64,000 bases of DNA from Rhodosorus marinus CCMP1338 (GCA_029953675.1 JAMWBK010000002.1:1674001-1738000), one strand, 5' to 3'; shown: positions 2,647 to 54,139, counted from the stretch's first letter. Notes: a model not told the origin generated them from the letters alone. Made by a program: numbers and translations.

Positions 2647-3660
2647 CTACTCGTTCACGTCTCCGTCATTTCCATCTAGTGATGAGCACGCCACCTGCCT
2701 GACGTGCCCATTCTCCGTAACGACCTTACAGAGCTCTTTCTCGGCATTGTTGTGCACCGTCCTCCGGTCGCAAAGGTCAGGATTGATAGGCGAACTGGGC
2801 TTGTTTTCACAGAAGCAGCCGTTCTCAGGATCTTCAATGTAGGGTTGGAAGTCTCCGCATCCCCAGAATAGAGTACAGATTTCTTGGTAGTTGCTGATAA
2901 TCTGACAAGGACTGCGCGGCAAAGCCTTATGATACAAGGGCTCCCTAAATTCTTTGGGAACACCAAGGAAGTCGTAGATGCGATTCACTTCCGTCTCCAT
3001 GTCCTTGTCAAAATCCTCGTACTTCACGTACATCAGGCAAGGCCACTTTAGGTTTCTGGCAATCTCCAGCGTACCCTCCCTGGTGTCCAAGGACTTCCAC
3101 AGTAACAAACTGAATAAATTGATGTCGTCGATAGGAAAGCGGCAGAGCTCTGGGTGAAGCTCACAGTGCTCCTCCGAAGTCTCGTTCTTCAACCCCATCT
3201 GCGAAGAGAGGTCATTGCGAGCTCGGATCGCGAAAAGACCCACGGCGGACATCCAGGGGTTCTCGCGGTAATTCACAACCAGCCGGGTATCATATTTGTC
3301 TATCAGTCCCTGCCAGAGATCCTCCCCACCACGAATGTTTCCCGGGCGAACCTTAAAACCGGGCGACAACTCCTCCCGACCTTCAGCCAGGACTTTGTCG
3401 AAAATAAGTTGTGACGTTAGCATTGACTCTTTTGCATGGAAGTTCATCGATATGAGCGGCTCAGTATTCCTGGGCACAAACAGCCTTGAGTTCTGAGCCA
3501 AAATAGACATCAGCGCTGTCGACCCAGAATGTCCCACGAATCCAAGAACAAACGTTTTCGCCCTCCCTGCGCATTGGGTCTCCGGTTCAAGCTCTGTAGA
3601 ACTTGCGACCGAAGCCAAAAGTCCTAACATTGCAGAAAGGAGAAGCTTTTTCAACTCCAT
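2647..3660 (-). CDS. Sulfotransferase-like paralog, 337 aa, intronless
   Basis: Signal peptide, GFVGHSGSTALM and VKYEDFDKDMETEVNRIYDFLGV. Collinear with 688-1701 (PGFK.RPG, HC.LHPE.C.F.I, shared Cys pattern). Confidence 0.7.
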   Translation of the reverse strand: MELKKLLLSAMLGLLASVASSTELEPETQCAGRAKTFVLGFVGHSGSTALMSILAQNSRLFVPRNTEPLISMNFHAKESMLTSQLIFDKVLAEGREELSPGFKVRPGNIRGGEDLWQGLIDKYDTRLVVNYRENPWMSAVGLFAIRARNDLSSQMGLKNETSEEHCELHPELCRFPIDDINLFSLLLWKSLDTREGTLEIARNLKWPCLMYVKYEDFDKDMETEVNRIYDFLGVPKEFREPLYHKALPRSPCQIISNYQEICTLFWGCGDFQPYIEDPENGCFCENKPSSPINPDLCDRRTVHNNAEKELCKVVTENGHVRQVACSSLDGNDGDVNE

Positions 3661-19693: not shown

Positions 19694-21163
19694 TATTAGC
19701 GCCCCTCGGAAGCAACTACTTTTCAACAGCTCTTCGCCCAGACTTCGAGCAGAATAGCCTCCGGACGAGTAGTTCGGCAATTTTTGGACCCGACGAAACC
19801 CCTGAACAAAGTCGACGTTCTGCTTTGTGCGTGTTTACTACACAACAAACACCCTGCAGACAGCCGATCGCTTTCGTCACTTAACCGTTCCTCAGGGTGT
19901 CCCTGCTAAAAAGAGAGTGTGGCGAGGGAAGCGGATGGGACACGGCCGGATGCATTCCCCAAGCGGCTTATGGGAGAGATTTCGCTTTCCCGAGTATTCT
20001 TTATATCTCGTTAGGGGATATTCATAGGAGGGAGGTAGCAGGAGCTCCCGATGTACAAGCTTACAAAAAAACCGGTTCGAATGGGTTCTTCATCCGTCCT
20101 CAACTGTTGCGACCAATCGCGCTTTGGGATTTCTTTTGATAAGCGTTCGGGCAAGGGCCATTAGTAATCTGAACAGAAAATAGAGCTCTGCTCAGGCAAA
20201 AACATGGTTGGAGCTAGTTAGCTAACCCCAGAACACTCACATGTCACTGAGGACGGCTACGTTAGTCCTGGGTACTCGACCCGCCGTTTTGCCCCGCACA
20301 ACTCGTTCTCCAACCACTGTCTGTTTCCCCTGACTTGGATCTTAAATCTTAGTGGACGGCCGTGGCACAGGACTTGTCCGGAAGGATTCCTCTCGTGCTA
20401 AAATCCGAGCCGGAAAGATCGCTGTCTTTTGCGGGAAGCTCGGCTCGTATACATCTTGCTCAAGTACCGCGAAGACCTGTTAATAGTTCCCGCGCAGAAT
20501 AGCAAGGCGCCTTGTTTTAACCGTATCTATTACTATTCTGGGCAATTTGACCAATCATCTTACTTCCCGGGGTGCCTGAGTTGATTGAATATCAATATTT
20601 CTTTAGGAATTAGATTGGGTTTGTCCGTTTGGCGCGCACTTGGCTAAATATAGAACATGCTCATTTTTTGATCCAATAGAACAAGGGTTGCCAACTCAGC
20701 GTGGGAAGAGAAGAAGCTAAAAAGTTTCACAAAATACGTGAGTTCCAATATGTCCGGAAGCGTTGCAAAACTCTGTTCTGCAAACCACCCCTCCTTGCCG
20801 CTTTCTAAAACTTGCTTACATCTGAAATACATTAATTGCGTAAATAAATCCAGTAATAATTTTTGACAATATCTGCTGCGATGTCCTTTCTCTCCAATCG
20901 CTGCCTTTTGGCTAAAGTTACAAACAATACATCTGGTCCTGGTTCGCAATTGTTTCCAAAAAAGAGGGTTACGGCTGCGCAACCTAAGTTCGGGCTTTTT
21001 TCCTAGAGAGTTCTTATCTTTTGAGGAAGAAAAATTTACTTCGCGATTGGCGGTGGAGACTATGCAAGTGATTGATGATGTCGGAGAAGAGGGGGTCGAA
21101 AGGTCGACTCTTATTAAGGAGACGCACTAGTGTGTTTCCGAGCTTACTCGACGCTGTACCTGA

Positions 21164-24100
21164 GTGAGCATGAAGAGGTTGGAGCATCCAGCGCCTCTGG
21201 GGTTCGTCATGATGATGTCAAAAGTGCTGCACGGTCAGAGCGCAGCCCGTTATGCGGGAAGGCGGTTTGGGTTTGGCGTTCGATGCTGTGCCACGGCTTC
21301 CAGCAGCAAACCAAAGACTGTTCTTCGCGGCAACTTAAACTGGGCGCCGCTTCATACGCATACGGACTACTCATTCCTAGATGGAGCGAGTCACGTACCT
21401 GATCTCGCCAGCCGCGCTGCAGAGATGGGAATACCGGCTCTAGCCATCACTGATCACGGTGCCATGCATGGAGCAATACAGCACATGAAGTCCTGCAAAC
21501 AACATGGTGTAAAGCCGATAATTGGAAACGAAATGTACGCTATCCCACCGGACATTGCTTACGCCGGACGAGTGGGAGTTTTCGCTTAACTTTGGCTTTA
21601 GCTGACGATTCCCGCTTCCAAATTTCTACTAGGTACATACTGAACGGGGATATTGAGGCTGACGGATACAAGGGACTTGTTCATCACTTGACAGTTATAG
21701 CAAGGAACTCGAAGGGCTATCAAAATCTCGTCAAGTTGACATCCATGAGCCACTTGCAAGGCATGAAATCCAGGAACAGATCAAAACGACCAGCAATCAA
21801 CAAGGAACTATTGCAACAGCATTCTGAGGGCTTGATCATTTTAAGCGGGTGTCTGGCAGGCGAGATACCGAAAGCATTGGTGGCAAGTAGGTTGTCCTGC
21901 AAGTAGCAATATTTTCTCATGACCGGATAGAGGGTTTCCACTAGAATCGAATCTGAAGAATTTCCGGCTTTGACCAAACCTAGATAGGTATAACGTCGCC
22001 CGAGAGGTTGCATTATGGTACCGTGACACTTTTGGTGCCGATTTCTACCTGGAAATGATGGATCATGGTTTACCTGCGCAGCAGGTTGCAAATGCCGGTA
22101 TCATTCAACTGAGTAAGGAACTTGGGATAAAAACGGTTGTCACGAACGACTCTCATTTCACAATGGCCTCCGATTGTTATGCCCACGATGTATTGCTTTG
22201 CATACAGGTAAGCCGAAACGGCACTACCGGTTGAAATGGAGTCTCATCGCGAGTATGCTGATATAGGATGTCATGCTTTCCATCTTTACAGACCGGAAAG
22301 CTAGTTAGCGATCCGAACAGAATGAAGTACACCGGTCAAGAGTATTTCAAGAGCGCTGATGAAATGATGGAGCTCTTCCAACATCCGTCCATAACGAGGA
22401 GCGACATTGCAGGTTCGCTGGAGAACACCCTTGAGGTGGGGTTTGATGCCTGACATATCCAGGGGCAACAGTTACATCCATTGGGCAATTCTTACTATCC
22501 CAGCTTATTCTCGCATAAACTAGGTCGCAAGCAAGGTCGAAGATTACAACATTCTAAGCGCACCACGAATCCCAACGTACCCTCTACCCGACGGTTTTGA
22601 CGGATCCATTGAGGTGCACCGAGCAGAGTCAGTTCTTTCTTTGATTACTGGTTGAGACTAACGAAGAGCGCTGCTCCTAAATGACACTCGACTATTGTCT
22701 ACAGGACTACTTTCGAGAAACCGCGAGGGCGGGCTTGAAGGAACAGATCGGTGATCAATATGAGGTTGCTCAGTACGAAGATAGGCTTGAGTACGAACTC
22801 CAGCTTTTGATTGACAAAGGGTTCGCAAGTTACTTTTTGATAGTTTGGGATTATATTCGATACGCTCGTGAAAACGGTATATCTGTCGGCCCTGGGCGTG
22901 GATCCGCGTGCGGGTCCCTCGTAGGTGAGACGCAGCTCTGTCCTTAACCCAGTTCTGATTGTACCCCAAGAACGCCTTTACGAGGCTTTTCCTTTAGTCT
23001 GGTTGGCTCCAAGCCGCCACGGCAGTCTTCGATCGCCGAGCTTTGTCCTGAACAGTTGTCTTCCACATCTTCACAGCCTACGGACTTAGAATAACTGAAA
23101 TCGATCCCGTCAAACACGATTTACTATTCGAGAGGTTCTTGAACCCCGAAAGAACCAGCTTGCCCGACATTGACACGGACTTCTCGATGGAGGGACGAGA
23201 GCGTGTCATACGATACGTCACTGAAAAATACGGAGAGGATCACGTTGCTCAAATCATCACTTTCAACCGTTTATCCTCGAAATCTGTTTTAAGGGTATAA
23301 GAAATCGGCTGGAACGATTGCCAACCAGTTGCTTGATGAAAGTGCACTCACGAAATAGCTTTCATGCGCATTTTAATTCCTGAAGGACTGCGCAAGGGTG
23401 ACCGGGATTCCATACGCTGAAGCAGACAAAGTGTCAAAACTCGTGCCTGTAGCAAGAGGAAAGGCAACCAAATTAGAAGCAATGATTTCAGACGGATCTC
23501 CATCGCCTGAGTTCAAGAATCTGTAAGAACAATTAAGACACAACGGAGAAGCTCTTGCAGTCACTGATCAATATTTCGCCTTGTCTACACCTCGATTGTG
23601 TCAGCTATGAGACAGAACCAAAAATGAGAGATCTTGTAGATGTTTCTATGATATTGGAGGGTACAAACCGGAACAGCGGTGTACACGCAGCTGGAGTCGT
23701 TATCGGGGCAGAACCGCTGAATACGATAGTCCCGTTGGCTAGAGGAAAGAACAATGAAGTGGTCACGCAGTATGCAATGGAGGAACTTGAAGACGTGGGA
23801 CTGCTGAAGATGGATTTTCTCGGTTTGAGAAACCTCAGTATCATCGATAGCACGAGGGAATATGTGGCGAAGAAGTGAGATATTCCTACACGCACTACGC
23901 CTGGGACGTCGACTGAGTGAGCCACTCACTCTGGGTCGTCCGTTATGTTGTATTGCGTAGGAATGGTGAACAACTACCAATTCTGCAGGACCTCTCCTTC
24001 AGTGACAAAGGAACGTATGACTTACTTTCCACTGGCAAAGTCGATGGCGTCTTCCAGCTAGACGCCTCAGGTGGAATGCAGGAGGTACGCGATGAGCCGT

Positions 24101-26952
24101 TAGAGGAATGGCGTGGCTCTCCTGGTGGGAATGTAGCTTGCGCTACTCAACTAACTGCTTAACTTCCTGGCTTGCAGATTGTGAAGAAGTTGGGACCGAA
24201 CTCGATTTCAGATATTTCGTCTATTCTTGCACTATATAGACCAGGACCGTTGGACGCTGGACTTGTGGACACTTTTATTGATAGAAAACATGGGAGGGAG
24301 CCAGTCCAGTTTGAACATCCACTCCTCGAATCCATACTTCACGAGACGTACGGAGTTTTAGTATATCAAGTGCGTCTGTTTTGCATTTGCTAGTTCGCCT
24401 GAAATCGTAACAGCGTGCCTGACTAGAAGTTCGTCTTTTTTTTTCCTCGCAGGAGCAAATTATGCAAGTTGCCAGGGATCTAGCTGGCTACAGTCTCGGA
24501 CAAGCTGATATTCTACGACGAGCTATGGGGAAGAAGAAAACAGATGTTATGGAACACGAGCGTGGCAGATTTGTCTCCGGCGCCATCAAGAACAATATTG
24601 ATAGGAAGCTTGCTGAAAAGTTATTTGAAAGCATGCTCAAATTTGCGGAGTATTGCTTCAATAAGAGTCACTCCACAGCCTACGCGTGAGCCCGTTAGCC
24701 TTTTGCTCGGTACTCTGAATCGTATTCAGTTTAAGCACTGACAAGAATTTTGCTTTATGATGTAGGTACCTTACATTCCAAACAGCGTGGCTAAAGACCC
24801 ACTACCCCGTAGAATTCATGGCTTCTGTTCTCCGGCTGAACTCGGACAACATGACAAAACTTCCGAGATACATTGATGACGCTGCCTCGCAAGGTGTTGT
24901 TGTTCTTGCTCCCTCTGTAAATACGAGCGACGTAATGTTTGCCCCTGTGTATACGCTGCCATCTGGTTGCAAGGCACCGAGCTCAAGGTAGGGACGGAAT
25001 GTTGCGGATTAGCGTTGTAGAGCATCAGAATTAAGTTCAGTTCTCTTTCCGTAGGAACGGGTATGTGGGCTTTGGACTTGGCGCTGTCAAGGGAATCGGA
25101 GAAGTCGCTGCGCAAGCAATCACCGACGAAAGAATCAGGGGCGGGGATTTCAAGTCCATCTTCGACTTCTGTGCGAGGTACGACCGTTTAGAAGGGACTT
25201 TGGTGTGGTTTCGTATTGCGGAAGCTCATCCACCCTAGCGGAACGATTAGTATTGACGAGAATTCTACTTCCTCTTCGGTAGGCTTCCTTCAAAAGTAGC
25301 GGGGAAGCGGGTCCTTGAAAACCTTGTTCAATGTGGAGCATTCGATGATCTCCATGAGAACCGTAAAGCGGTTTTCAACTCAATTCCCCAAATTTTGGAC
25401 TGGCGGAAGAAGTTAGACGCAAAACGAAAGCGGGCTGCCGCCAAGCTGAAGGAAGGAGGCCTTTCTGAGGTTGTGCATGACATAGACTCTGACGAAATTG
25501 TGAACAAGATAAGAGGGTCCTGGCTGGAGGCGGAATCCGACTATAGCGTGATGGAGAGGTACTTTATAGAAAAGCAGCTAGTTGGCTTCCTGACCTCGGG
25601 TGACCTTCACAAGGAAGTGAGTCACTGCTGAATCGCGAAATCGTTTCAACATGAGACTGTGTCGCGACGGCTGATTTTGCTCTTTCCTCCGTATTCCTAG
25701 TACGAGCGTTGGGTTCGGTTTGCTTTGCCGAACACGTTGGATGCAGCCAGAGGAGGCCCTCAATCCCCAGCGGAGGAGTCGGAGGTGCTCGATGATCGGC
25801 CTCAGGAAGCAGGTATCTGGCGATGCGAATTCTAATTCAGTTTAATCATAGGCAGAGAAATTAATGCTTTTCTTCGACTTCCATGATGGCGTTTGACAAC
25901 AGAAGCCAAACGACAGTCAAGCGACCAGTTCTACTCTAAACCTTTAAAGGATGGCGAATCGGATCTCTTTTTTGGGGTTGTTACTGACACGAAGAAACTG
26001 TTCACTAAGAACGGCGCGAACCCAATGATGAAGTTCACATTGGAAGACGCCACTGGGGAAATTCCGTGCGTGGCGTTCACAAGGACCTATGCACGGTAAG
26101 AACGTGATTGACATGAGGTTGCTTCTCTGAACCTTTTGCGTTGGATCGCTGTACGTTCTGCTGCCCAGCTTACCCTTTTCGCCGTGTCAACGCAAACACA
26201 AAAACAAACTACAGGGTGAAGGACTATCTTGAAGTAGGAAACCGTGTGGCCGTCTACGGCAAGGTGAGGAGGTACTCTGGTGCAGAGATCCATGTCGAAG
26301 GCGCACATATGATGGAAGATTACATTGTTGTCTTGGCTTACTTGGAGAACCAGGGCTCTGCTTCCAAGGTACGATCAAGAGTGTTACAGTCAACCGATTG
26401 GGTTGTATCAGTTTGCTAAGCCAACTGGGTTCCTTCCCTTCTGCGGAAACAGCCAACAATCAGGGAGAACTTGACTGGTGCTTTGGAACATCTTGCAACC
26501 CAGCAAGATGGTGGTAACACGATGATGAGTTTGAGGATTGCGGTACGTCTTGTTTTTGGTTAATGCTCTTGAAAAGTTGCTCATTCGTCGGCTTTCCCGG
26601 GATACGCTGATGAATTCGATGGATCCGGCCTCGCTTCGTCACTCATTGGAAGCTCTTCCTTTCTTTTGAACAGACCATTGGATCGCGATCGGATCCGTTG
26701 ATGCCCGAAAATATTGTAAACAGCAGATGGAAGCACATTGTAAGGGTAAGGGACAAAGAATATGTCCGCAGGGTTTTCATGCATTACGACGTCCCCGCGT
26801 TGATATGCCCACTGCGTGACTATGAGCGACTGATGAGGGACCGAGACATCAAAAAGTTCGAAGAACAAGTATTCTACGGAGATGAAGAGGAGCCAGTGCG
26901 TGAGGACGACTACGCACAAACGCTTGAGCGCAAAAACGTCGGCAGCGGCTAA
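21164..26952 (+). CDS. dnaE: DNA polymerase III alpha subunit (family C), nuclear-encoded, 20 exons, ~1327 aa, with transit-peptide-like N-terminus
   Basis: Hand-built exons: 21164-21534, 21633-21886, 21984-22207, 22292-22435, 22524-22613, 22705-22924, 23077-23294, 23386-23522, 23605-23874, 23961-24084, 24178-24369, 24453-24685, 24766-24987, 25055-25177, 25283-25616, 25701-25812, 25903-26095, 26215-26368, 26453-26542, 26674-26952. All introns are GT-AG and all phases are consistent. Motifs: [74 protein letters not shown] and an OB fold. Confidence 0.95.
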
Positions 26953-27986
26953 GTAAGCCTGCAGTCGCTGTTGTCTGCAGAAAAATGATTGCTTTGTCGG
27001 CCGTTTGATTGCTCTGAACAAAACGGAGGGAGTACTTTATGCCTCGTCTCAATCTCCGCAGCTAGGAGGGCGTTGTAAATTGCTTGTCATTTGGAGGCGA
27101 GTACTGAACGCTTCCGCAGAGTGTTCGGTACAGGAAACTCGCGCACACTCAGATTTTTCGATAGCGAATAGTAGTTCTGGAGATCTTGGCGAGCTTTTAC
27201 GGCCTCAGTCGTCCAGTTCACCCTTTCCATGGAGAATCTCATCTGGACCGCTCGCAGCGCTCAGGCAAGGTTGACAGTCGAACTGACCATTGGATATATG
27301 GTTTGTGGATTCTCGTTCACCATTTACCCACCTGGATCCTGCGCAATGCCTTTTTGGGGAGCCACATTAGAGCTTTACGGGCAGCTCCTCAGCAAGGGGT
27401 CATGGACTGAGAACTCGAACCGCTGGCGCAAAGCAAAATCATAAGCAGAACCGGAGACGAGTGAAGCACATGTCCATTGGCAAAGTCACCACAGCTCGAT
27501 CGAGTGTCCAGGAATAGATTAAAATCAAGTAACCGATTGGAATATTGGTGATAGGTTTGAACCTACCCGCATGGAATTGATACTGCAGCCGAAAACGAGT
27601 GAGAGGAGCAATGCTTCAAAACCGGGGCAAGATAAACCAGATTGCAAATAGTGGTTATTATCTTAAAACTTTGTAACGGCTACTTGTTCTTAGCAGGAGA
27701 TTCAAATAATGGCCGGGGTTAATTTAATTGATATAATTTCTAACTTCAACGCCTTTCCAAAGGGAGTGTTTGATGACTGTGTATATGCCATGCTCGGGCT
27801 GTTGTCACATTCCAGGCAGCGGTGCCCTTGAGGAGAAGAGCATAGGTTCGGGATTTGGCCTTCTCTGTGCTGTTTGGGATATATTGTTTAAGTGTAGAAC
27901 AGGCAGGCTATGTAGATGAATTTGTCTGACCTAGGGTGTAGGCTTCAAAGCTTTTCTTCCAGTTCAAGCAGACAATAGAGCAATCA

Positions 27987-35457: not shown

Positions 35458-36569
35458 TTTGTTGCTCTTAATTGTTCGTTCTTTCCTGTCGCGTCCCCGA
35501 CAAGGCTCTCGTTAAAAGCTTGATGTACGTGAGATTCGGTCGAAGATGGAGGTTCTCTCAGAGCTACAGAGATCGATGGAGACGCATGCACCCGTTCTCT
35601 TCTACCCGAGCAACCCCACTGATCACACAGCGGCTAGCAATTTATATACCAACTATAGTGCTAGATATAGGCACGCAGAGATCTAAACTAAGACATTATC
35701 TCTAGAATAGTACAAGATACCTAGATCACGTCATATATATGAACGTGTGAACCAATGAACGTGTTTCAAACAGTCTTGGTAGTTTCCCCGTTGGGATCTG
35801 CGTTCGCCTGACACAAGACGCTACGAAATGGCTGGGCGAACTTCCCATCGTTATTGGACAGTTAGCTAACATGATGTAGTGTGTATTTTCCTATATCGTT
35901 GAATTTGAGAAATATTTCAGGTCTTTCTAAAATTGGAATAAGCCGCCCAGGCCCGCGCCAACCAAAAGTGTCTTTGCGTAAAAGTTTCTTGATATTGTGA
36001 TGGTTGAATTTTGTTCATAAAAAAGAAAATAGTACGAATATGGAAACAGTGTGGCTTTGTCAGCGAAAAAGAGGATTTTTGTTTGCTGAGCGGACAGGGG
36101 TTTCGTTTTACTGTGAACAACGCGGCTTGGGGAACGCACGCCCGTCTTTAGCATCGGATGAATGAACCTGTTGCGCGGTTAAACGCATTTCCACTGGGAA
36201 AGCGGGTTCTAGATTGCTTCAAACTAACCGGAACAGCCGAAGCCTGCTATAGGCAGGGTTTTTGTTTTGTAGCTGTTCGTTACTATTTGTGGAAAGCAGA
36301 ACCGGGAGGTCTTAGTCATGTAGAAAATACGACGGTTTGAAGAAGTCGTAACGTCCGTAGAGTCTTTTGGTTCCCTTCGGACCGTTCACGACTTCTTTTG
36401 GTCACGTCAAGAGCCTCTGTGTCAGATTTCTGAACTGGGAGCCCCCCTGAACGTCCTTCCCTTACCTCATCCTGGAATCAGCCGACAAACCTCTAAACGT
36501 CTATTGAGTACTTTTTTTGTGGATACTGTGATAGTCGAGTTTGTTTAGAAAAAGAAATCAGGAAGAATA

Positions 36570-36830
36570 TGGAAGCAGTGTTGGCTAAAGAACGAGGAGA
36601 GACGGTCAGGGCGTTCGCGGAACACCTCCCGACACCAACTAGAACCAACAAAGTCCATAAACCCAAAACACAAAATGGTCAGAGCGACCTGGCGGTGAGC
36701 TTAAGCCGACGCGCGAATATCCGGGGAAGATAGAGCCTCAGCACATTTCACTTCTTTGTGATGGCGCATAGCGCCAGCGGCAAATCCACGGCGCTCTCCC
36801 GCAGCCGGCAAATATAATAGCTAGCCCGCG
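36570..36830 (-). mobile_element. Degenerate family B RLE fragment
   Basis: Nucleotide similarity to 32150-32410 (GGAGAGACGGTCAGGGCGTTC.CGGAACA; CGGCAAATCCACGGCGCTCTCCCGCAG). Confidence 0.7.
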
Positions 36831-37199
36831 GATTAGCCCCCAACAAATTCGTTCAAATTCATTCTTCCTATAAATGCGCAAGTGGCGACAGTCGAGTTTC
36901 GAGAGCTGCACGTGTATGATAGCGGGGTTTTGGGGGGTGTTTTCCTTAGAGCGCTATGCAGGGGGAAAGCCGCGAGCGCCCCGACCGGATCTCCTAATTA
37001 GTCTGGGGTACTGCTGTGGGCAGCTACCAAGCAAAGTTTACGGTTTCGTTAACCTGGGGTACGACACGCGTTTGAGAAGGATCGAGCCAATCGCGAGATA
37101 GGTATTTTCTAGATGAGACCCCTGAACGGGGCTGCTGGGTATGTTTAGTGCGTACTAAGTATGTTAGTGGTTGACCATCCTGTGGAATACTTGGAGCTC

Positions 37200-38575
37200 C
37201 TACCCCGTTTCAGTGTCGCTCTTTGGGGTTTTGCAAACAAGTCCTGTGCACAGCGTTGGGTATTCCGGTACACCTGATTTCACATATAGATTTTGTTGCC
37301 ACCCACGCACTGCTGGTATGTCATCCTGACGCGATACCGTTGATCACCAGCGCCATTAGGAGGGGAGTCTTCCGCTCAGGTGTGTTTGGTTCCTTCGCGA
37401 GACTCCGCCAAGATCACCAGGTAACAATTCACACCGGAGTCGAGCCAGAAGCGCGGAACCTGATCGGATACAATGAGAGGCTCACACTGCAGACACATGA
37501 AGTTAGCCAACGCATACTTGAACGAGCCATTGAACAGATGGAGAGAGTTAAGCGCATGATATCCCAGCGGTCCACGCCGTTCACTACCTCGGCTTCCGTC
37601 CGTGCGCGCCTGGATGCTCGCCTGGAGTATCTGCGCTCGCGCCTTGAAACGCAGGAACCCGCAGCCCACCGCATGGCCTCCACTGTTACGGAAATAGAGA
37701 GTGAGATCCCCCTGCGGACAGGAGCCGATAACGAAAGTGCACCTATTCCCGAAGTCGCAGCGGGCAATGCACAAAGTGAATTACCGCCAGATCTTGGGCC
37801 CTCTGAAACTTCGGGTACAGGCAGCTCAGAGGCCCAGCCGAGCAGTATGGAAGTGATTCATGATGGAGATACGCCCACCACCGACGAGACACGATCTCTG
37901 AAGAAGTCGAGACAGGAGGATACCCCATCTGCGCCCGAAAACGCCCATTCATGAGCGTCCCAGGTTCGAGAAGCGGCTGAGAGACACCGCGTTGATCACC
38001 ACGGATCCGGAGGCTTGGGAACAACGGCTTCACATGTTCCTAGCCGCACAGACGGACGACGGCCGCCGCTGGTGGATGGTCACACATAGCCCTGTAATGA
38101 CCCGTAAATACGTACCTAATGCCCAGGTCAAGCATTGGAACCTACTACTCCACCGTGCTCTAGGTCTCGCACCGAACACTGCAGCGGTTCCGCCCTTAAG
38201 CCTCTTTATCATGGCACTACCACGCCTGCGCTAGGGATCTGTGATCTTCAGATCGGCGAACAGATAGAAATGCACCGGCTTCTCGACGAAGCTAGGGAGC
38301 ACCATCCCCATAAATGGAACCCGTCTGACGCGAGCGACGAATCACTCCTCGCACTGATCAATAGACAACCGCCAAAAACGGGTCCTGGGCCAAGTGGCCT
38401 TCGCGCCGAGCATCTACAGCCAGTGACTCCAACGAATAGGCCTCTGCTGGTACGGTTCCTGCTCTGTCTCGTGCAGAACCCTGAGGTTACGTTAGTCTGG
38501 TTGTTTTATTAGTGCGCTACGGTAGGTAGCAGCCGAATGAAGGCTACGGGGTTACGTTAGTCTGGGGTTTCGTTA
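37200..38575 (+). mobile_element. Family A CRE-like element, N-terminal region and start of RT, internally deleted
   Basis: CHPDAIP..GVFRSGVFGSF domain, KTGPGPSGLRAEHL (RT domain 0), then the tail motif. Confidence 0.75.
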
Positions 38576-39270
38576 GTCTGGGGTGCCGGTCCAATAACAA
38601 AAACACTCTCTCGAGAGTGCCACCGACAAGGGTTTGAGGTACTTACTGGGGATCCAACGCTGGAAGATATTGACCTGGCGCGCATCCGATCGGCAGACGG
38701 AACAGGATGTGGCGTATGGCGGCGAGACTGTCCTAGTACAGGGCCGAGGTAGTTGAACAGAGGTGAGATGATCTGGAGCATCCGGATGCTGTTGGGGCTA
38801 CCACTACCAGGACTAGCTCGGTCGTACACGTGCACGATTTGTGAACAAGCTCACGATGTACAAGGAATTCAACGTCTGCATCACTGCCGAACGTCGTCAG
38901 GCATGCGAACAAAGCGACATGATGAACTAGAAATGGAGCTGAGCCGATGGATGCACTTGTGGGATTTTACGGACCTACAAGTGGAGCCGCGAGGGTTCTT
39001 TTCCTGGTCGGGTCTTCGACCAGATATTGTAGCAAGGCACCCGACGAGCGGGCATGTGTACGTGGTGGACGTAACGGTGACGTCGCCGCTTCAACGTCAT
39101 CAACTTAGGCAAACGGGCTGGAGAAACGGATACGCAGCGGAGAAAGGGGAGCAAAGCAAAGTGGCACACTACCAGGAGGTAATATGCGTTGAAAGCAGGG
39201 AGGTGATACTCGTACGATTCATTGTTGAGACGTACGAACGGCTGGGCCAGGGGTTACGTCACTCTGCAGC
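38576..39270 (+). mobile_element. Family A zinc finger plus RLE fragment
   Basis: CTICEQAH..LHHCRT..RTKRHDEL, LRPDIVA..YVVDVTVTSP..AEKGEQSKVAHY..RFIVETY. Confidence 0.85.
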
Positions 39271-39386
39271 CTGGGGTATCCAATGAAATAGTCTGGAGTC
39301 TGGGGTATCCAATGAAATAGTCTGGAGTCTGGGGTATCCAATGAAATAGTCTGGAGTCTGGGGTATCCAATGAAATAGTCTAGAGT
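39271..39386. repeat. 4 x 29-bp tandem repeat CTGGGGTATCCAATGAAATAGTCTGGAGT
   Basis: Read directly. Three copies are perfect and the fourth has one substitution. Confidence 0.9.
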
Positions 39387-39399
39387 CTGGGAACGTTAG

Positions 39400-40250
39400 T
39401 CTGGAATCTGGACTGGTATAAGAAGTCTGTGGTTATTCGAGAGTGATGACGAACGTTGGAGAACCCCCCCCGCGTGGGGAAGGAATCTTGAGCGATGAGA
39501 GTGATCCTCTGGGAGACAATTGCTGTCGCGCTGATCAGCTTGAGGAGGGGGAAATCGAAGAAAACTCGGTGCAGTATGTACATGAGTTTACAAATGGTGA
39601 TAAGCCAGCCCATACAATGGATACTGCATCAACGCTTACAGAAGAGAACTTTCTACAGGGCTCCATGCAGAAGTTCTCGAAGTACACCGCCCTTTACGAA
39701 GATGTTGGGGTGGCAGTCGCAGAGATACAGCGTTTTTTCGTTAACGTCGACCGGTTGTACACCTTGGCAGGCACAACGGCTGACCTGAAGGGGATTAATG
39801 ATCATCTGGAGCGTTTGGGTGCAAACCCCACGCTGTGGAACCCCTCGGAAGTGCCGCAAGGAGGTCACCCCCGCCGTGGACAGAACCAGAAGATACCCTA
39901 TCAACTTGGGAGTCAATCCAAGGATCAGTCAACAGAGCAGTCTGGGGGACAACACAACCACGACATCTTCATCCCCTTCTGTCTGGAAACATTTGGGCAG
40001 ATGGGACAACAAGCGAGTGAGTTCCTCAAGGAAGCGACTATACACCTAGATCAGCGGGCAACGCAAGTAAGTGAGGCTCGGGCGATCTTGAACCGCACTC
40101 TTTGGAAAGGAAACGCTATCCTCGCCACCCAAGCTCGTCGTGTCGACAAAGCAGACTATGACATCGTCCCTATCTTAGAACGTAGCCACACAACCCATTA
40201 GGGGTTTCTTTGCTGACCAATAGGATCCTTATTCCTTCTTAATGGGCTCC
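39400..40250 (+). mobile_element. Chimeric or internally deleted CRE-like element (family A 5' end fused to an RLE C-terminus)
   Basis: The 5' part is near-identical to 43460-43800. The 3' part reads FIPFCLETFGQMG..LNRTLWKGNA. Confidence 0.65.
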
Positions 40251-40299
40251 AATAGGGAGCTCTTCAGTAAAGTGTACGCGGTTACACCCAACATCGACG

Positions 40300-40935
40300 G
40301 GACTGTGGCAGCGAAGGCACAACGAAATCTGTACGGAGCTGGCGCGATGGGTGAATCGCTGGAATTTCATCGACATTAAGCAAGAACCGGAGGTGTACTT
40401 CGAGAACTACAGACTAAGACCGGATATCATTGCTACTCATTCCAGGACGCTCCAACGGTATGCGCTAGATGTGACGGTTACATCGCCACTGCAGGAGAAA
40501 TACGTGAATCGGAGTGGGTCAGAGAATGGATATGGAGCGAAACGAGCGGAGATGTGGAAAATGGCACATTACAAAGAGGCGATGTCAGTGGAGAAGCCAG
40601 ACGACAAGCTCATTACCATTGCGATCGAGAGCTTTGGGGGTACAGAACAAATGGCCCAAGAATTTCTACGAGATAGGTGCAAGCATTTGTTGCACCGGAG
40701 CTTAGAACTGAGCGATGTTCGGGCTCAGATCAACCGCAAATTATGGCAGGGGAACGCGGAGATAGCGATAGGCGATCTGCGAGTGGACCAGTTGGCGAAT
40801 CCACTGGTCCCTGTTTTTTGGTTTGACCGTAGCATGAGACCCCGGTAGCGGGGTTAGCGTAAGCTTTTCCGTAGATAGTAGTAGAACTAGTGATAAGCTG
40901 CAGTAGGCAGCTGCCCAGTAAAGTTTACGGTTACG
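40300..40935 (+). mobile_element. RLE C-terminal copy of the 45.5-50.2 kb element
   Basis: Near-identical to 49600-50235, including the tail. Confidence 0.85.
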
Positions 40936-40949
40936 ATAGTCTGTAAATC

Positions 40950-41790
40950 AGCATCCATCGAAGGCCGTACAGCGCACATCGGTTGCGGCATACTCGGCGT
41001 ACTTTAACAGATGCCTTATCCAAGAGGGCACCATTTCGGGTTCCGAAAATTTTGACCGCTTCGACGAAGGACTCAAACCCGACTTCAAAAAATACATTTA
41101 TATACAAGATGTGACAACCTTCGAAGAGGCTCAAGCTCTCGCGTTAAAGATTGAAGGAGCCGAGGCAGCCAGCTACAGCTCGGGGCCGGACACGGGAGCA
41201 TCGAAACAGCGGAAACCGGAACCAAGGGAAACTACCTTCGAGAGAAGAGGAACCCGTTCCGGCAGAAAGTATCTACCTACTATCCAGGAGCTAAAACGTC
41301 GCAACTATGCCAACATTATCTGCGACTACTGTGGAAAAGGGGCCATACGAATTGCATTTGCTGGAGTAATCCAGGAAGGGATCCGACTGTTGCGAAGTCG
41401 GCACCTCCATCAACCCAGCGGTTAGAAGAAGAGCAGCAGTAGGGGACGCCGCTACTGTTGCTGAAAAAGGCGTCCCTATTCCTCTCCACGGGGATATGAC
41501 AGTCCATTGGTTGGTCAACGGCAAGGAAACCCCCCCCTGCTGATCGATACAGGTAGCAGCCATTCTGCCATAAGGGGATTGCCAGAATCGGGGCCGTTGT
41601 TACCTTCCCGACATAGGCGATTGGACACAGCGTCACCGGGCGCATCGATTGACATCCTGGGTGAGGCCGATGTGACCCTGCAACTAGGTGGTCATCACTT
41701 CGATTGGCAGCCCTATGTAGTTGAAGACGCCGCGAGCTCCGGATATTTAGGAAGAGATTTCCTACAAAAAAATATAACGCGCAGCTGAAT
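40950..41790 (+). mobile_element. Ty3/Gypsy-like gag-protease remnant
   Basis: Zinc-knuckle-like CDYCGKG(GH) with a frameshift, and the aspartic protease motif LLIDTGSSHSAI..GRDFL. Confidence 0.65.
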
Positions 41791-41799
41791 TTACTCAAC

Positions 41800-42270
41800 C
41801 ATGCCCTGATCATACAATGATGAACGCCGTGTAGCCGACCTGGTGATCACCTGTGACGACAGCCGCCGTACCACATACGTTGATCTTGCTGTTCCTAACC
41901 CTCAAGCTAGTCGTTATCTCCCCGCTGCGGGGGAGCGCCGTGGATCTGCCGCCGCCAGCATGAGACGCCGCAAAGAGATCAAATACGCGGGGGCTTTGTC
42001 TTCCCCTGGTGTTCGTGCTTCGGCACTAGCACATCGCTTGGTACCCCTGATCATTGAGTGCTTTGGGTTCATGGACTCTGTTGGTTCTCGCTGGCTTCGG
42101 GAGTTGTTCCGCGAACGCCCTGACCGTCTTCAATCGTTGTTTACCCGCTTAAGTTTCCTGCTGTGGCGCATGAATGCCGCTTTGATGTTGGAGGCGCGAG
42201 TACTTCGCGGCGCTTAGTCTTTTTTTCCCCTCGGGGTTTTTTTTTCAGCCTCCGATTAAACCATTCGCAA
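41800..42270 (+). mobile_element. Family B RLE 3' fragment
   Basis: The translation is identical to the C-terminal 124 aa of 54196-54978. Tail CAGCCTCCGATTAAACCATTCG. Confidence 0.9.
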
Positions 42271-43305
42271 TGGGGTTGACGGGAAAACAGTGTCTGCGGA
42301 ATGGCAACCATTAGCAGACTGTGCAAGAGGCACTGAGACGGATCAGACGAGTTCCGCAGGATATGACGGTCCCATTCAAAAAACGCTCTCTCGAGAGTGC
42401 CATCGTCACGCCTTCGAGACACTCACGGAGGATGCAACGGTGGAGGACGTAGACAGGCCATGAATCCGGTGGGCGGCAGGACGGGTTGTGGCGTATGGCT
42501 AAGAGACTGCCCTAACGTGGGTCCGCGGAAATTGAGTTGGGCTGAGATGATCTGGAGCATGAGGATGCTTCTGGGGCTACCCCTACCTGGCCTAGGCCGG
42601 TCATGCAGTTGCACAGTCTGCGAGCAACCACACGATGTGCGTGGGATCCAGCGGCTGCACCACTGCAGGACGTCATCGGGGATGCGAACAAAGAGGCACG
42701 ATGAGCTGAAAGTCGAACTGAGTCGATGGCTACACCTATGGAATTTCACAGAGATAGTAGTAGAGCCTCAGGGGTTCTTTGCTGGGTCCGGAATTCGACC
42801 CGATATTGTAGCACGGCACCCAACGAGTGGTGGCGTGTACGTGGTCGACGTGATGGTAACATCGCCACTTCAAAGGAATCAGTTGAGGCATACGAGCTGG
42901 AGGTGCGGATATGCTGCGAAACAAGCAGAACAAGCGAAGGCGTTGCATTATAAGGAAGTGCTGAGGGTGGAAAACCGAGACCTGGTTTCTGTGCCCTTCA
43001 TTTTGGAGACTTTTGGTCGAATAGGCGAGGCAAGCCTTGAATTTCTTCCCATAGGGACGGCGCATCTGCATGATCGTGACTCCCATCTGTCGTCTGTGAG
43101 GGGTCAATTAAATCGGATTCTGGGGCAGCATAATGCAGCGCTAGTTGAGCATGCGATCGAGAAAGATCGCGCGGATAGAACAATATTTCCCTTGAGTAGA
43201 ACTTAGGTGGGACCCCTGGACAGGGGGTGTAAGTGAGTTTGGGGCGAACATATAGTAGTGGTATTGCGCTGCGGTAGGTAGCTGCCGAATAAAGGCTACG
43301 GGGTG
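42271..43305 (+). mobile_element. Family A-related zinc finger plus RLE 3' region with tail
   Basis: CTVCEQPH..HHC..RHDEL, IRPDIVA..YVVDV, VPFILETFG, stop at 43206 and the tail hairpin motif. Confidence 0.85.
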
Positions 43306-43439
43306 AAGCAGTTAGGTGTGCCTCTCTCGAGAGGGATTGTTGTATGGAACCTTGCTTTACCTCAGGCTGGTCCGGGGTTAGTAAAGCTTACGGTTACGTT
43401 AGTCTGACGTTAGTCTGGAGTAAAGCTTACGGTTACGTT

Positions 43440-45495
43440 AGTCTGGGATAGTCCGGAATCTGATCTGGTATAAGAAGTCTGTGGTATTTGAGAGTGAAGA
43501 CGAACGTTGGAGAACCCCCCCGGGTGGGGAGGGAATCTTGAGCGAGGAGAGTGCCCCTCGGGGGGACAATTGCGGTCGCGCTAATCAGCTTGAGGAGGGG
43601 GGAATCGAAGAAAGCTCAGTGCAGTGTGTACATGAGGTTACCAATGGCCGGTTGTACACCGTCTGGAGCGTTTGGGTGCAAACCCCTTGCTGTGGAACCC
43701 CTCGGAAGTGCCGCAAGGAGGTCACCCCCACCGTGGACAGAACCGGAAGATACCTTATCAACTTGGGAGTCAATCCACGGATAAGTCAACAGAGCAGTCC
43801 GGGGTGGGACACCGAGAGTTGCCAACCATGGGACAACAGCAACTGGGACAGCAGACCCGGGACAGTCCGGGGTGGGACAGCACACTACCACCGCTGCTGG
43901 TATGTCATCCTGACGCGATACCGTTGATCACCAGCCATTGCGAGGGGAGTCTTCCGCTCGGGTGTGTTTGGATCCGCGCTACACTCCGCCAATATCACCA
44001 GGTAACAATTCATACCGGAGTCGAGCCAGACGCGCGGAACCTGATCGGGTACAATGAGACGCTCACACTACAGACACATGAACTTAGCCAACGCACACTT
44101 GAACTAGCCATTGAACAGATGGAGAGATGTAAGCGCCTGATTTCCCTGCGGTCCACGCCGTTCACTACCTCGGCTTCCATCCATGCGCACCTGGATGCTC
44201 GCTAGTAGCTGCGCTCGCGCCTTGAGTCGCAGGAACCCGCAGCCCACCGCATGGCCTCCACAGTCACGGAAGGAGAAAGTGAGATCCCTCTGCGGACAGG
44301 AGCCGATAACGAAAGAGCACCTATTCCCGAAGTCACACCGGGCAATGCACAAAGTGAATTACCGCCAGATCTTGGGCCCTCTGAAACTTCGGGTACAGGC
44401 AGCTCAGAGGCCCAGCCGAGCAGTATTGAAGTGGTTCATGATGAAAATACGCCCACCACCGACGAGACACGATCTCTGAAGAAGTCGAGACAGGAGGATA
44501 CCCCATCTGCGCCCGAAAACGCCCAATCATGAGCGTCCCAGTTTCGAGAACGCGGCTGAGAGACACCGCGTTGATCACCACGGATCCGGAGGCTTGGGAA
44601 CAACGGCTTCACATGTTCCTAGTCGCACAGACGGACGACGGCCGCCGCTGGTGGATGGTCACACATAGCCCTGTAAGGACCCGTGAACACGTACCTAATG
44701 CCCAGGTCAAGCATTGGAACCTACTACTCCACCGTGCTCTAGGTCTCGCACCGAACACTGCAGCGGTTCCGCCTTTAAGGCTCTTTATCATGGCACTACC
44801 TCACCTGCGCTAGGGATCTGTGATCTTCAGATCGGCGAACAAATGGGGCATCTCTTGGAGGGTGAATTCTCAGTTGTATGGAAGCGTTTAAATGTGGCGG
44901 CCACCAGTCAGCCCTCTCCTCGTGAGAGGAGGGCTGATAACGGGAGAGAAACATGGAAAAATAGACAGGTTGTGAAGACAGGTTGTGAAGCTGGCCCATT
45001 CTGGACGCCTCTCTGCAGCTGCACAGCGCCTGGAGGCCACGGAGCTCGCACCGCAGGCGTCGTCCACGTGGAATGGGTGCGTGAGCTATTTCCAGAGGCC
45101 TCGATGGAACCGTTACATCCGGATGTTGCGATAGAAATGCACCGGCTTCTCGACGAAGCTAGGGAGCACCCTCCCCATAAATGGAACCCGTCTGACGCGA
45201 GCGACGAATCACTGATCGCTGATCAATTGACACCCGCCAAAAACGGGTCCTGGGCCAAGTGGCCTTCGCGCCGAGCATCTACAGACAGTGACTCCAACGA
45301 ATAGGCCTCTGCTGGTACGGTTCCTGCTCTGTACCGTGAAGAACCCTGAGGTTACGTTAGTCTGGTTGTTTTAGTAGCGCGCTACGGTAGGTAGCATCTG
45401 AATGAAGGCTACGGGGTTATGTTAGTCTGGGTTTTTTGTAGTGCGCTACGGTAGGTAGCAGCCGAATAAAGGGTACGGGGTTACGTTAGTCTGGG
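43440..45495 (+). mobile_element. Family A element 5' region, degenerate, largely duplicating 39400-39950 and 37300-38560
   Basis: Near-identical nucleotide blocks and the shared breakpoint GAACCCTGAG/GTTACGTTAGTCTGG. Confidence 0.75.
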
Positions 45496-48400
45496 GATAA
45501 ATCGGAAAATATATCGGTTTGGAACTAAATTCGTAAATGATAGAGAAGGAAGTACGCGGGCCGTACCCGGAGCCTCTTCTGCTCCCGGGAAACCCGCCCT
45601 CGGTTACACGCGCATGGGAGAAAGAGCTGCTGCAACAGCAGCAGCAGAACCAACAGCAGCACCAGCATACTGGAGCAGAACAGGACGCAGAGATGAATGC
45701 AGAGAACAGAGGAGAGGGGCAGGCTGCAGCCGACCCAGCTGTCGCCTTTCTCCACCAGATGCACAGCTACGACCGGTGCTACCAAGCCCTGGGAATTGGC
45801 GAGACTGACATTGTCGACTTTTACCAGGCAGTCTTCAACCTTTATTCGCGGATTAATTGTTCGAAAGAACTGCAAGGAGTGACAGCACGTCTCAACGAGC
45901 TAGCCCAAAAACCGTACATGTGGCATGGTGGACCAGCCACTACGACCTCGCCTCAACCCCCGCACCATTCATTCATTCAACCCCCGCAGCAGCACCCGCG
46001 GACGGCGGCAGTCAATCAATATGCGCCAGAACCGATCAACAATCAACTTCCGGAGGGGACAGGTGTCCTAGCCTCAGCGGACTATGCCACGGCCTTCCCT
46101 GTCATCGGGACCAGCAGCACACGGCCAGCGCACGCTCAGTGCACTGTCGAAAATACTCCAGCTCGAGAATCAGAGGCTCAACTCCGATCAGCAGGACGCC
46201 CGGGCTCACAGACCCAGCAGGCAGCGCTGCGACAGCTGCACGCCACAGTGGGAGGGTCCTCCTGGGGACCTGAGACTAAACCGATCCTCGCCACCCTTCG
46301 AAACGTCCGCCCCCCATAGGCAGGATGAGGTGGCACCTTCGGACTTCACCACCGTCCTCTGCCGCGCGCGGGGAATAGCAACCTCTCACATCGCGCATGT
46401 GGACTTCATCTCATCACGCGCAAGCTTGCTCTGCCATCCCGATGCAATCCCGATTGTGCAGAGCGCTATCGCCTGAGGCATTTTCAGAACAGGGATCTTT
46501 GGATCGTTCACATTGAGACATCCTGACTGGCAAGTGACTCTCCACACAGGACAGGGATTGGAGGCTGACAACCTGCTGGGCTACAACGAAAGGCAAAGGA
46601 TCGCCCCAGAGGAGATCCCGGCCCAGACGCTGCAACGGGCCATACAACAGATCATCCGGATTCGCGCGAGGCTCGGAAAGAGACATCTGTCGTTCTCTAC
46701 TCTCGCAGCCATCCATGAAACGCTTGAAGGGGGTCTACGAGCGTTACGAGGCCTGCAACATTCGCCGGGGAGAGTGTAGAACCCCTTGAGACTGCAGCAG
46801 CTACACACGCAGCCCCAGAAGCCTCGGTTCCTCACGGAGTGCACAGGCAGCCCGCGGGACCGTTGACGCTTCGGGTGACTCCAGCGCTACGTCTCAACCA
46901 CCACACGAGGATGCCGAAGAGGAAAATCCACACCCCGAGCTCCCGCACAACCTTCCGGAGCCTCCGCAACAGAAGCGCACACGCGTGACAGCGGCAGGCA
47001 CATGCCATGACACCGAGATGACTCTCGCAGCCCCAGAAGCACCTCAGCGCGATAACGATGCCCAGACCCCCTCCGAAGCCCACGATAATGCGATGGACAT
47101 CCAGACCAGTCAGGAGGACAACCCCCAATAATGCCGAGCCGACGTAGGGGAATCTCGGCGCTTCGTACCTCGCCCACACGTCAACGCCTGGAGCAGCCTC
47201 CTTCGGGTCGCTCTGGAGCTCACAATGGACCGCAGCGCACCAGTGAATGCCAGCCTCCTCCTCTCCGGGCTCCCAGGATTGGTCCTCGGGAATACTGCTC
47301 TTCAAATCGGCACGCAGGTCACGAACGTACGCGAAGGCGAGTTTCACACAGTCTGGACTGCTCTCGAGGAATATGCCTCCAACCAGATACGTCGCACGGC
47401 ACTAAGCGGACCTGAGATAGCCCAGGAACAGGCGCAAAGGCGCCGAAAACAGGCCCTGAAATTGGCACATCTCGGACGCGTTTCACACGCGGCCCGACGA
47501 CTACAGGCCACCGAACTGGCTCAATTTACCAACGCTACGTGGCACCAATTGGAGGAACTCTTTCCGGACCCGACGGAGTGTCCCCTACCGGAGGAGGTCG
47601 ACCAAGCCCTACAACTCCTGCTCTCCAAGGACACCGATAATCTCAGGAGAAGATGGAATGCTCGACAAGCAGCAGATGAAGGTATTCTCGCGATAATAGC
47701 CCGGCTTCCCCAAGGTACCAGCCCCGGACCTAGTGGACTCCGAGCAGAACACCTGCAGGGGGCCACTCAGGACGTCCAAGTGGCTCTAATCCGCGTTCTC
47801 CGGCAACTAGCTACGGCACCAGAGAAGTTTGCACCCCCGATGACCTCGGCAATGCGTAGCAGCAGATTACTGCCGTTCGAAAAACCCACGAGCAACACAA
47901 CCGCTGCAACGAGACCTGACATCCGGCCGATTGGAATCCCCGAAGTCCTCCGAAAGGTGGCCACACAGTGGATCCTTCGATCGGTTACCGACCGCGTTAC
48001 CGAACTGCTCACACCTCTACAACTAGGCATCGGAGTTTGCGGTGGATGTGAACGATCACTACACGCGATCCAGGCCCATCTCTCGTGCGAACCTGACGCC
48101 GTCGTCTTACGGCTCGACCTGGAGAATGCGTTCAACCGCATCGACCGCCGCATCGCAAAGTAAATCCTGGACCACCATTTGCCCGAGCTGGAAGCCGTGT
48201 ACCGGCTTGGCTACGGAAATGACAGCACGGATGCTCCTACACTCTTCGGATGGCGTGATTACCAAGGTCCAGACCAAGACGATACCCATCGCTTGACGCT
48301 TCGGGCCACAACGGGAGTTCAACAGGGAGATCCCCTAGGGCCGATCCTACATGCGCTCTCCCTGGCGCCTTTCTTGGAAGCATTGCACAACAAAGCCTCT

Positions 48401-50245: not shown

Positions 50246-50635
50246 GGGGTGCCGGTCCACTAACAAAAACACTCTCTCGAGAGTGCCACCGACAAGCGTT
50301 TGAGGTACTTACTGGGGATCTAACGTTGGGAGATATTGACCGGGCCCGCATCCGATCGGCAGCCGGAACAGGATGTGGCGTATGGCGGCGAGACTGTCCT
50401 AGTACACGCCGAGGCAGTTGAACAGAGGTGAGATGATCTGGAGCATCCGGATGCTGTTGGGGCTACCACTACCAGGACTAGCTCGGTCGTAAACGTGCAC
50501 GATTTGTGAACAAGCTCACGATGTACGAGGAATTCAACGTCTGCATCACTGCCGAACGTCGTCAGGCATGCGAACAAAGCGACATGACGAACTGAAAATG
50601 GAGCTGAGCCGATGAATGCACCTGTGGAATTTTAC
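50246..50635 (+). mobile_element. Family A zinc-finger fragment with the same 5' junction as the 38576 copy
   Basis: GTCTGGGGTGCCGGTCCA.TAACAAAAACACTCTCTCGAGAGTGCC occurs in both. Confidence 0.8.
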
Positions 50636-50679
50636 GGGGGATAAGTTAGGATAAGTGTGTTTCACGATCATGAAGATGA

Positions 50680-53040: not shown

Positions 53041-53349
53041 TTTTTTATGTTTTCTTATTTTTGGATACCTTTCTCTCTCTCATCCTTGTCTGGAGGCTGA
53101 ATACCTCCCTATTTATAGTCGAGTTTCTCATGATCAATCCTACTTATGCTTCTGATTTGTCTGTAGTTTGTTTTGTAGCCATTCCTGACCTGTACGCATT
53201 TTGGTACTCCGGGTGACTCCAGTTGTTTTGTCACGATGTGTCATGTCAAGTAGTGACACACCTCCCACCGAAGGAGAGAGCTTCCAGGTTGAAGAAGCAG
53301 GTTTGTGAAGATTCTCATAATATCGAATTTGTCGCCTGGTATTCTGGAA

Positions 53350-53915: not shown

Positions 53916-54139
53916 AGGATACTCGTCTGGTTGTTTATGTTCAGGAGTCTCCTCTGGTTTTGGTTTGTTTTCTTCCGGGTAATTTTCGTCGGGGTTATTT
54001 TCTTCCGGATCATCTCTCAGGAGTTTTAAGATTTTCACGATTTTCTCCAGGTTGAGCATGTTCATCATCAAGGAGTTTTTCAGGTTGATTTCCCAGATAA
54101 TTTTCAGGGTTTTCTTCTTCAGGTTGTTCTGGATGTATG

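Follow-up and report, generated by a model that had tools for sequence, protein, structure and literature searches.

A spliced nuclear gene of Rhodosorus marinus encodes a cyanobacterial-type DNA polymerase III alpha subunit with an import-like leader

The window analysed here is a stretch of 64,000 nucleotides from Rhodosorus marinus CCMP1338 (GCA_029953675.1, JAMWBK010000002.1:1674001-1738000), and all coordinates refer to this whole stretch. Its plus strand carries an intron-rich dnaE gene, the product of which is identified by sequence as an alpha subunit of DNA polymerase III (Pol III) of the DnaE1 type, a family C DNA polymerase of cyanobacterial ancestry. The gene is nuclear, spliced, expressed and selectively constrained. 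The best explanation, which we regard as fairly probable, is that it is the R. marinus orthologue of an alpha subunit that red algae inherited from the cyanobacterial ancestor of the plastid, and that its leader directs import, most likely into the plastid stroma, of a competent, self-proofreading and probably clamp-independent enzyme that works beside the family A polymerase POP. A dnaE1-type gene would have passed from that ancestor to red algae; the R. marinus gene is transcribed, freed of its 19 introns and translated with a basic presequence of 58 residues, which would deliver the alpha subunit to the organelle. There, the enzyme may combine polymerization with proofreading by the metal centre of its own PHP domain and, having lost the canonical contact with the beta clamp, would probably need neither the clamp nor the clamp loader of bacteria; it could share the replication or repair of organellar DNA with POP. 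The kind is already known and the R. marinus protein is already named in a public database, and so the gene is a well-verified example and not a discovery.

The gene model was built from a three-frame translation of 21100-27000, in which DnaE-like open segments change frame every ~100-350 nt. Frame-compatible GT...AG pairs were enumerated between adjoining segments, and the consensus-like pairs were joined. The resulting model has 20 exons and 19 introns, all of them GT-AG and 67-152 nt long, with a guanine-plus-cytosine (GC) content of 0.49 in the exons and 0.47 in the introns. The coding sequence of 3978 nt runs from the ATG at 21170 to the stop codon at 26950-26952 and specifies 1325 residues. 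This agrees with the frame-consistent structure of 20 exons and 19 introns proposed in an initial annotation of this DNA and corrects its start (21164) and its product length (~1327 residues): an in-frame TGA, present in the window and in the transcript contig L002, lies two codons 5' of the ATG at 21170 and rules out a start at 21164, where only the reading frame opens.

21170..26952, plus strand: coding part of the nuclear dnaE gene; the product equals KAJ8907721.1, and the model runs colinear with the transcript open reading frame (ORF) P0124
21114..21169, plus strand: 5' untranslated region, minimum extent; transcript L002 aligns without a break from 21114 over its first 60 nt
21170-21534, 21633-21886, 21984-22207, 22292-22435, 22524-22613, 22705-22924, 23077-23294, plus strand: exons 1-7
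23386-23522, 23605-23874, 23961-24084, 24178-24369, 24453-24685, 24766-24987, 25055-25177, plus strand: exons 8-14
25283-25616, 25701-25812, 25903-26095, 26215-26368, 26453-26542, 26674-26952, plus strand: exons 15-20

A protein search with the Rhodosorus model returned two near-identical clusters. The model is 100% identical to one of their members, GenBank KAJ8907721.1 ('hypothetical protein NDN08_007827 [Rhodosorus marinus]'), which carries the UniRef name 'DNA polymerase III subunit alpha'. The MMETSP transcript ORF P0124 from another strain (1327 residues) aligns with all 1325 residues at 95.8% identity and with 0 internal gaps; therefore, every splice junction is used in vivo. In addition, introns 1-15 are spliced out of the JGI transcript contig L002, which derives from another R. 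marinus strain and keeps intron 16, so that the splicing foreseen in the initial annotation is borne out by both transcripts. The transcripts and the identity to KAJ8907721.1 also decide two junctions for which other splice sites had been considered and were dropped, a 106-nt intron instead of the 67-nt one at junction 13 and GTTGTC instead of GTAGGT at junction 2. The intron 16 kept in L002 (3290-3530 of the contig, against 25813-25902 of the window) leads to a premature stop after ...EAGISQSEF, and its retention reflects either an unspliced intermediate or regulated retention. A comparison of 1080 codons with L002 as the second strain gives a dN/dS of 0.066 (dN 0.016, dS 0.24), showing that the protein is under strong purifying selection.

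The locus occupies 1,695,170-1,700,952 of the 3.48-Mb scaffold JAMWBK010000002.1 of assembly GCA_029953675.1, the genome of R. marinus CCMP1338 (PMC10250338), and lies mid-scaffold. As the initial annotation had read its surroundings, the called genes within ~10 kb are all eukaryotic; they encode an MTPAP-like poly(A) polymerase, a cytochrome-b5 fatty-acid desaturase, TMEM70, a KRTCAP2-like protein and MAP65/ASE1. The GC content of the dnaE gene is the same as that of its surroundings. The introns, the transcripts, the neighbours and the GC content speak against contamination and against a chimera. Contamination, chimerism and pseudogene status are all excluded.

The protein matches five Pfam models (PHP, DNA_pol3_alpha, finger, HHH_6 and OB) in the canonical DnaE order of PHP, palm/thumb, fingers, HhH and OB, all far above the gathering scores and with E-values from 4e-95 to 2e-10, and no family A polymerase domain is found among its Pfam matches. 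The best solved relatives are the Pol III alpha subunits of Thermus aquaticus (Taq; E=6e-233) and E. coli (~1e-213). The coding span is divided as follows.

21170..21343, plus strand: N-terminal leader, residues 1-58, presumed organelle-targeting presequence, with no counterpart in cyanobacterial DnaE
21344..22556, plus strand: PHP domain, residues 59-340 (Pfam core residues 61-234), across introns 1-4; PF02811, E=5.6e-47
22708..23824, plus strand: palm/thumb, residues 361-624; PF07733, E=3.5e-95
23163-23183, plus strand: PDIDTDF, residues 462-468
23807-23824, plus strand: KMDFLG, residues 619-624
23831..24596, plus strand: fingers, residues 627-794; PF17657, E=2.4e-55
24893..25370, plus strand: HhH / beta-binding domain, residues 867-968; PF14579, E=5.4e-23
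within 24893..25370, plus strand: lineage-specific HhH insert of 13 residues, residues 886-898, across intron 13, also in transcripts
25434..25466, plus strand: site of the internal beta-clamp motif, residues 990-1000, placed by alignments
25782..25970, plus strand: charged insert of 33 residues ahead of the OB fold, residues 1078-1110, across intron 16, with no cyanobacterial DnaE equivalent
25974..26299, plus strand: OB fold, residues 1112-1180; PF01336, E=2e-10
26315..26949, plus strand: divergent C-terminal domain, residues 1186-1285, and acidic tail, residues 1286-1325, placed by alignment

The palm carboxylates Asp-463, Asp-465, Asp-467 and Asp-621, described as intact in PDIDTDF and KMDFLG by the initial annotation, are all present and are kept in every aligned sequence. 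The metal ligands of the PHP domain, read from a ligand table and from the alignment to Taq Pol III alpha (2HPI), are kept at nine of nine positions (H62, H64, D71, H96, E121, H140, C195, D262 and H264). A PHP centre with all nine ligands is the ancestral, proofreading form, and in mycobacterial DnaE1 it is this centre that acts as the proofreading exonuclease (PMC5636811). These residues suggest that the R. marinus alpha subunit may be catalytically competent, with PHP-based self-proofreading.

Alignment against 25 cyanobacterial DnaE sequences reveals four additions in R. marinus: the 58-residue N-terminal leader, the 13-residue HhH insert, the 33-residue charged insert and the acidic tail of 40 residues. 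Residues 1-58 lie upstream of those that align with the cyanobacterial N-termini, in agreement with the extra leader of ~58 residues noticed before the PHP domain by the initial annotation. The share of positions at least 90% conserved in cyanobacteria that R. marinus keeps is 67% in PHP, 77% in palm/thumb and 74% in fingers, and 47% in the clamp-binding, 42% in the OB and 43% in the C-terminal module. The differences between strains run along the same gradient, being lowest in the fingers (1.7%) and highest at the C-terminus (10%). The C-terminal domain of residues 1186-1285 corresponds to the tau-binding region of bacteria. Cyanobacterial DnaE1 and the solved alpha subunits (Taq 2HPI; E. coli 2HNH/5FKU; M. 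tuberculosis 5LEW) are collinear with the R. marinus protein through PHP, palm, thumb, fingers, HhH, OB and the C-terminal domain, and their catalytic residues and nine PHP ligands are identical, whereas R. marinus has the leader, the two inserts and the tail in addition, has its clamp motif replaced, and keeps less than half of the cyanobacteria-conserved positions in the clamp-binding, OB and C-terminal modules.

The nearest non-Rhodosorus relatives among the matches listed in a first search are cyanobacterial DnaE proteins with 45-55% identity. An exhaustive search with residues 59-1200 against cluster representatives, named through cluster look-ups, brought out eukaryotic orthologues in the red algae Porphyridium purpureum (KAA8499587.1, GenBank name 'DNA polymerase III subunit alpha'), Cyanidium caldarium (KAK4537552.1) and Cyanidiococcus yangmingshanensis (KAF6000814.1), in the streptophyte algae Spirogloea, Mesostigma and Closterium, in the MMETSP transcript cluster P0260/P0312, in a Logan contig (P0129) and in a marine metatranscriptome cluster (P0144/P0281). 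P0129 is the closest non-Rhodosorus sequence by alignment distance and has 56% identity in the representative search; it comprises 1322 residues, is encoded at 124-4092 of L004 (a Logan SRR23527467 contig of 4874 nt) and begins with MYCLFVAPF, a classic example of the plastid signal of red algae. P0144/P0281 has a genomic copy at 8001-12002 of L005, an intron-less and extremely compact contig of 25-31% GC; its neighbours there are the eukaryotic housekeeping genes for NMT, eIF2-gamma, TFIIA, ribosomal S3 and the proteasome. The contig appears to be nucleomorph-like, which would place P0144/P0281 in cryptophytes. The Porphyridium orthologue, of 1495 residues, is one uninterrupted ORF at 3001-7488 of L003 (VRMN01000001.1), among eukaryotic genes.

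In a neighbour-joining (NJ) tree of 1126 columns and 100 bootstraps, whose sample contained no identified Gloeomargarita or Gloeobacter, R. marinus joins Cyanidium, Cyanidiococcus, Porphyridium, P0129, P0312 and P0144 in one red-lineage clade (bootstrap 90), so that the DnaE phylogeny suggested as a check in the initial annotation sets the gene among its red-lineage orthologues. The streptophyte copies make up a second clade (bootstrap 100). The eukaryotic clade is sister to the sampled cyanobacteria, and eukaryotes and cyanobacteria group with a bootstrap of 61, or of 96 with one further representative. This NJ tree is rough yet agrees with the maximum-likelihood trees given in a preprint by Antoine, Burki, Archibald, Pelletier and Delmont (May 2026, bioRxiv 10.64898/2026.05.23.727376). 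The 19 introns had been taken in the initial annotation to argue for long nuclear residence. This argument is weaker than stated: the Porphyridium gene is intronless and shares none of them, so the introns are established as neither old nor shared. It is the phylogeny that speaks for the age of the gene.

The E. coli alpha subunit touches the beta clamp through residues 920-924, QADMF (PMC4703070). The cyanobacterial GQGNLFD aligns to these residues (the 5fku chain has the QLDLF variant) and also to GQFDLF of the DnaE structure 7pu7. R. marinus reads AAKLKE at this site, and the entire R. marinus protein contains 0 matches to the motif Q..[LMIV]F. Among the aligned copies, the clamp motif is absent in R. 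marinus, P0129, Porphyridium, Cyanidium, Cyanidiococcus and Spirogloea, and it is kept in the nucleomorph-like copy (QPLFF) and in Mesostigma (QAKLF). The Mesostigma viride alpha subunit (P0152/P0296), which has lost six of the nine PHP ligands and kept QAKLF, has the reverse of the red-algal pattern. The available text of the preprint does not mention the clamp motif, and the loss of this motif in red algae is found neither there nor in Jain et al. 2014. The preprint finds beta in Pyrenomonadales cryptophytes alone, and in red algae it finds neither tau/gamma nor, in any species, a complete set of Pol III subunits. The red-algal loss of the motif parallels this reported loss of the clamp, and QPLFF in the nucleomorph-like copy fits the survival of beta only there.

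The clamp-motif pattern suggests a clamp-independent, self-proofreading organellar polymerase. The clamp motif is a feature of interaction and not of fold, and so the protein is still a DnaE homologue, yet probably not a subunit of a holoenzyme. Because the clamp motif is lost and the preprint reports neither beta nor tau/gamma in red algae, the alpha subunit more likely acts alone than within a Pol III holoenzyme, and the 'unusual organellar replisome' envisaged in the initial annotation is overstated. A broader proposal is that the red-algal alpha subunit is a solitary, clamp-independent, self-proofreading organellar polymerase, a replicase re-used without its holoenzyme for a billion years, that the loss of its motif tracks the loss of DnaN, and that in Stylonematophyceae it might additionally or instead serve the minicircular mitogenome; we advance this tentatively and with less than even confidence.

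The leader contains 10 Lys/Arg, one Asp/Glu, seven Ser/Thr and six Ala among its 58 residues, with an Arg-rich amphipathic segment at residues 21-38 (hydrophobic moment ~0.5) and the first Phe at position 12 (GFV). It is conserved in both strains compared. All eukaryotic orthologues have N-terminal extensions, of which that of R. marinus is the shortest (58 residues against ~80-300). The hallmark of plastid presequences in red algae is a Phe-based motif right at the N-terminus (PMC7038456). In agreement with this, three of the four red-lineage orthologues checked have a Phe within the first six residues, the fitting starts being MYCLFVAPF, MAFCLVP and MDALSFVP. R. marinus fits less well, and Porphyridium lacks an early Phe. 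Plastid transit peptides are also predicted on archaeplastid alpha subunits in the preprint. The leader is most reasonably read as a putative signal for organelle import; a nuclear, spliced, cyanobacterial-derived gene with an import-like extension, as the initial annotation had described it, is upheld. The plastid is favoured as the probable destination, and the mitochondrion, or both organelles, is a serious alternative.

Several points weigh against the explanation favoured here. The first Phe of R. marinus is at position 12 and not at the very N-terminus, the Arg-rich amphipathic stretch of its leader is typical of mitochondrial presequences, and the Galdieria orthologue is predicted to be mitochondrial by iPSORT and TargetP (PMC4316638). 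Moreover, the organelle placement of the red-algal copies is a prediction, the polymerase and exonuclease activities are predicted from residues, the absence of partner subunits is taken from the preprint, and the monophyly of all eukaryotic copies has a bootstrap of only 50 in the NJ tree. The same features of the leader, with its single acidic residue and a first Phe unusually distant from the N-terminus for a red-algal plastid signal, and the two predictions for Galdieria speak for import into the mitochondrion or into both organelles, where the enzyme would, in Stylonematophyceae, serve the minicircular mitogenome. In addition, the mitogenomes of R. marinus are minicircular, and its complement of genes for organellar replication and repair is altered (PMC10250338). 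However, the ancestry of the gene is cyanobacterial and not alphaproteobacterial, the preprint predicts plastid targeting for the archaeplastid alpha subunits, and most of the red-lineage orthologues checked carry the early Phe. Since the orthologue is also present in red algae with ordinary mitogenomes (Porphyridium and Cyanidium), it is not tied to minicircles. Mitochondrial or dual import is considered the less likely reading, while deserving some weight.

It is also conceivable, and distinctly improbable, that the protein is a relic whose role is minor or lies outside replication, such as repair synthesis or only a PHP nuclease or phosphatase activity, and that POP carries out the bulk of replication. 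The loss of the clamp motif and the high divergence of the clamp-, OB- and tau-interacting modules are consistent with such a role, as are the lack of a full subunit set in any red alga (bioRxiv 10.64898/2026.05.23.727376), the established position of POP as the red-algal organellar replicase (PMC3914683) and the patchy retention of the gene across Archaeplastida. However, the dN/dS value indicates that the whole protein is strongly constrained, the fingers and palm the most. None of the eukaryotic copies examined has lost a polymerase carboxylate; therefore, polymerase activity itself is argued to be under selection. The last alternative, that the locus is contaminating bacterial DNA, a chimera of the assembly or a gene recently acquired from a cyanobacterium, has in its favour that the closest non-eukaryotic relatives are cyanobacterial and is refuted, with a negligible chance of being right, by the 19 spliceosomal introns and their removal in transcripts of two other strains, by the place in the middle of the scaffold with eukaryotic genes on either side, by the matching GC content, and by the modest identity to the cyanobacterial sequences listed together with the clustering with red-lineage copies.

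A family C polymerase in the nucleus of a red alga was first put on record for Galdieria sulphuraria, with the nuclear dnaE1-type polymerase XP_005703203.1 (Jain et al. 2014, PMC4316638). Compared by description, it resembles the R. marinus protein in being a red-algal nuclear family C enzyme that is nearest to cyanobacterial DnaE1 and has a targeting peptide; it is predicted to be mitochondrial, and its discussion was confined to the strand skew that it might cause. Antoine et al. 2026 searched the eukaryotic part of NCBI ClusteredNR together with 46 rhodophyte genomes and report alpha subunits, in a position sister to cyanobacteria, from red algae, from streptophyte algae and from the nucleomorphs of cryptophytes. 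KAJ8907721.1 should fall within the search space so described, and the main text, as far as it is accessible, makes no mention of R. marinus by name. The R. marinus genome paper does not mention a dnaE gene (PMC10250338). The reports of Jain et al. and Antoine et al. and the UniRef name already given essentially remove the novelty that the initial annotation had entertained. The alpha subunits of Porphyridium, Cyanidium and Cyanidiococcus, which are of the kind described by Antoine et al., are like that of R. marinus in nuclear location, cyanobacterial ancestry, N-terminal extension and domains, and R. marinus differs by its 19 introns (Porphyridium has 0) and by the shortest leader. The presumed Pyrenomonadales nucleomorph alpha subunit (P0144/P0281, L005) belongs to the same red-lineage clade and has intact PHP ligands and catalytic residues, but differs in its compact, intron-less contig of low GC content and in its QPLFF clamp motif. 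The POP, Pol gamma and PolA-type enzymes share the presumed role, being nuclear-encoded polymerases imported into plastids and/or mitochondria (PMC3914683), but are of an unrelated fold and family.

In the standard account, POP took the place of the cyanobacterial replicase at an early stage of plastid evolution (PMC3914683). A retained alpha subunit alters this account, a point already made by others, and matters for the copying and repair of plastid DNA both in red algae and in their secondary descendants. The interest that remains lies in the clamp-motif pattern, in which organelle is served and in how an alpha subunit would work without clamp and clamp loader.

Elsewhere in the window, two convergent ORFs of 337 residues at 688-1701 (plus strand) and 2647-3660 (minus strand) are paralogues with 38% identity and have weak sulfotransferase matches (PF13469/PF00685). 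The region of ~36500-54500 is higher in GC (0.52-0.60) than the rest of the window and contains many duplicated segments of 100-300 nt with 74-97% identity. An ORF inside this block, at 48179-49981, has a weak reverse-transcriptase match, and the block is probably a cluster of nested retroelements.

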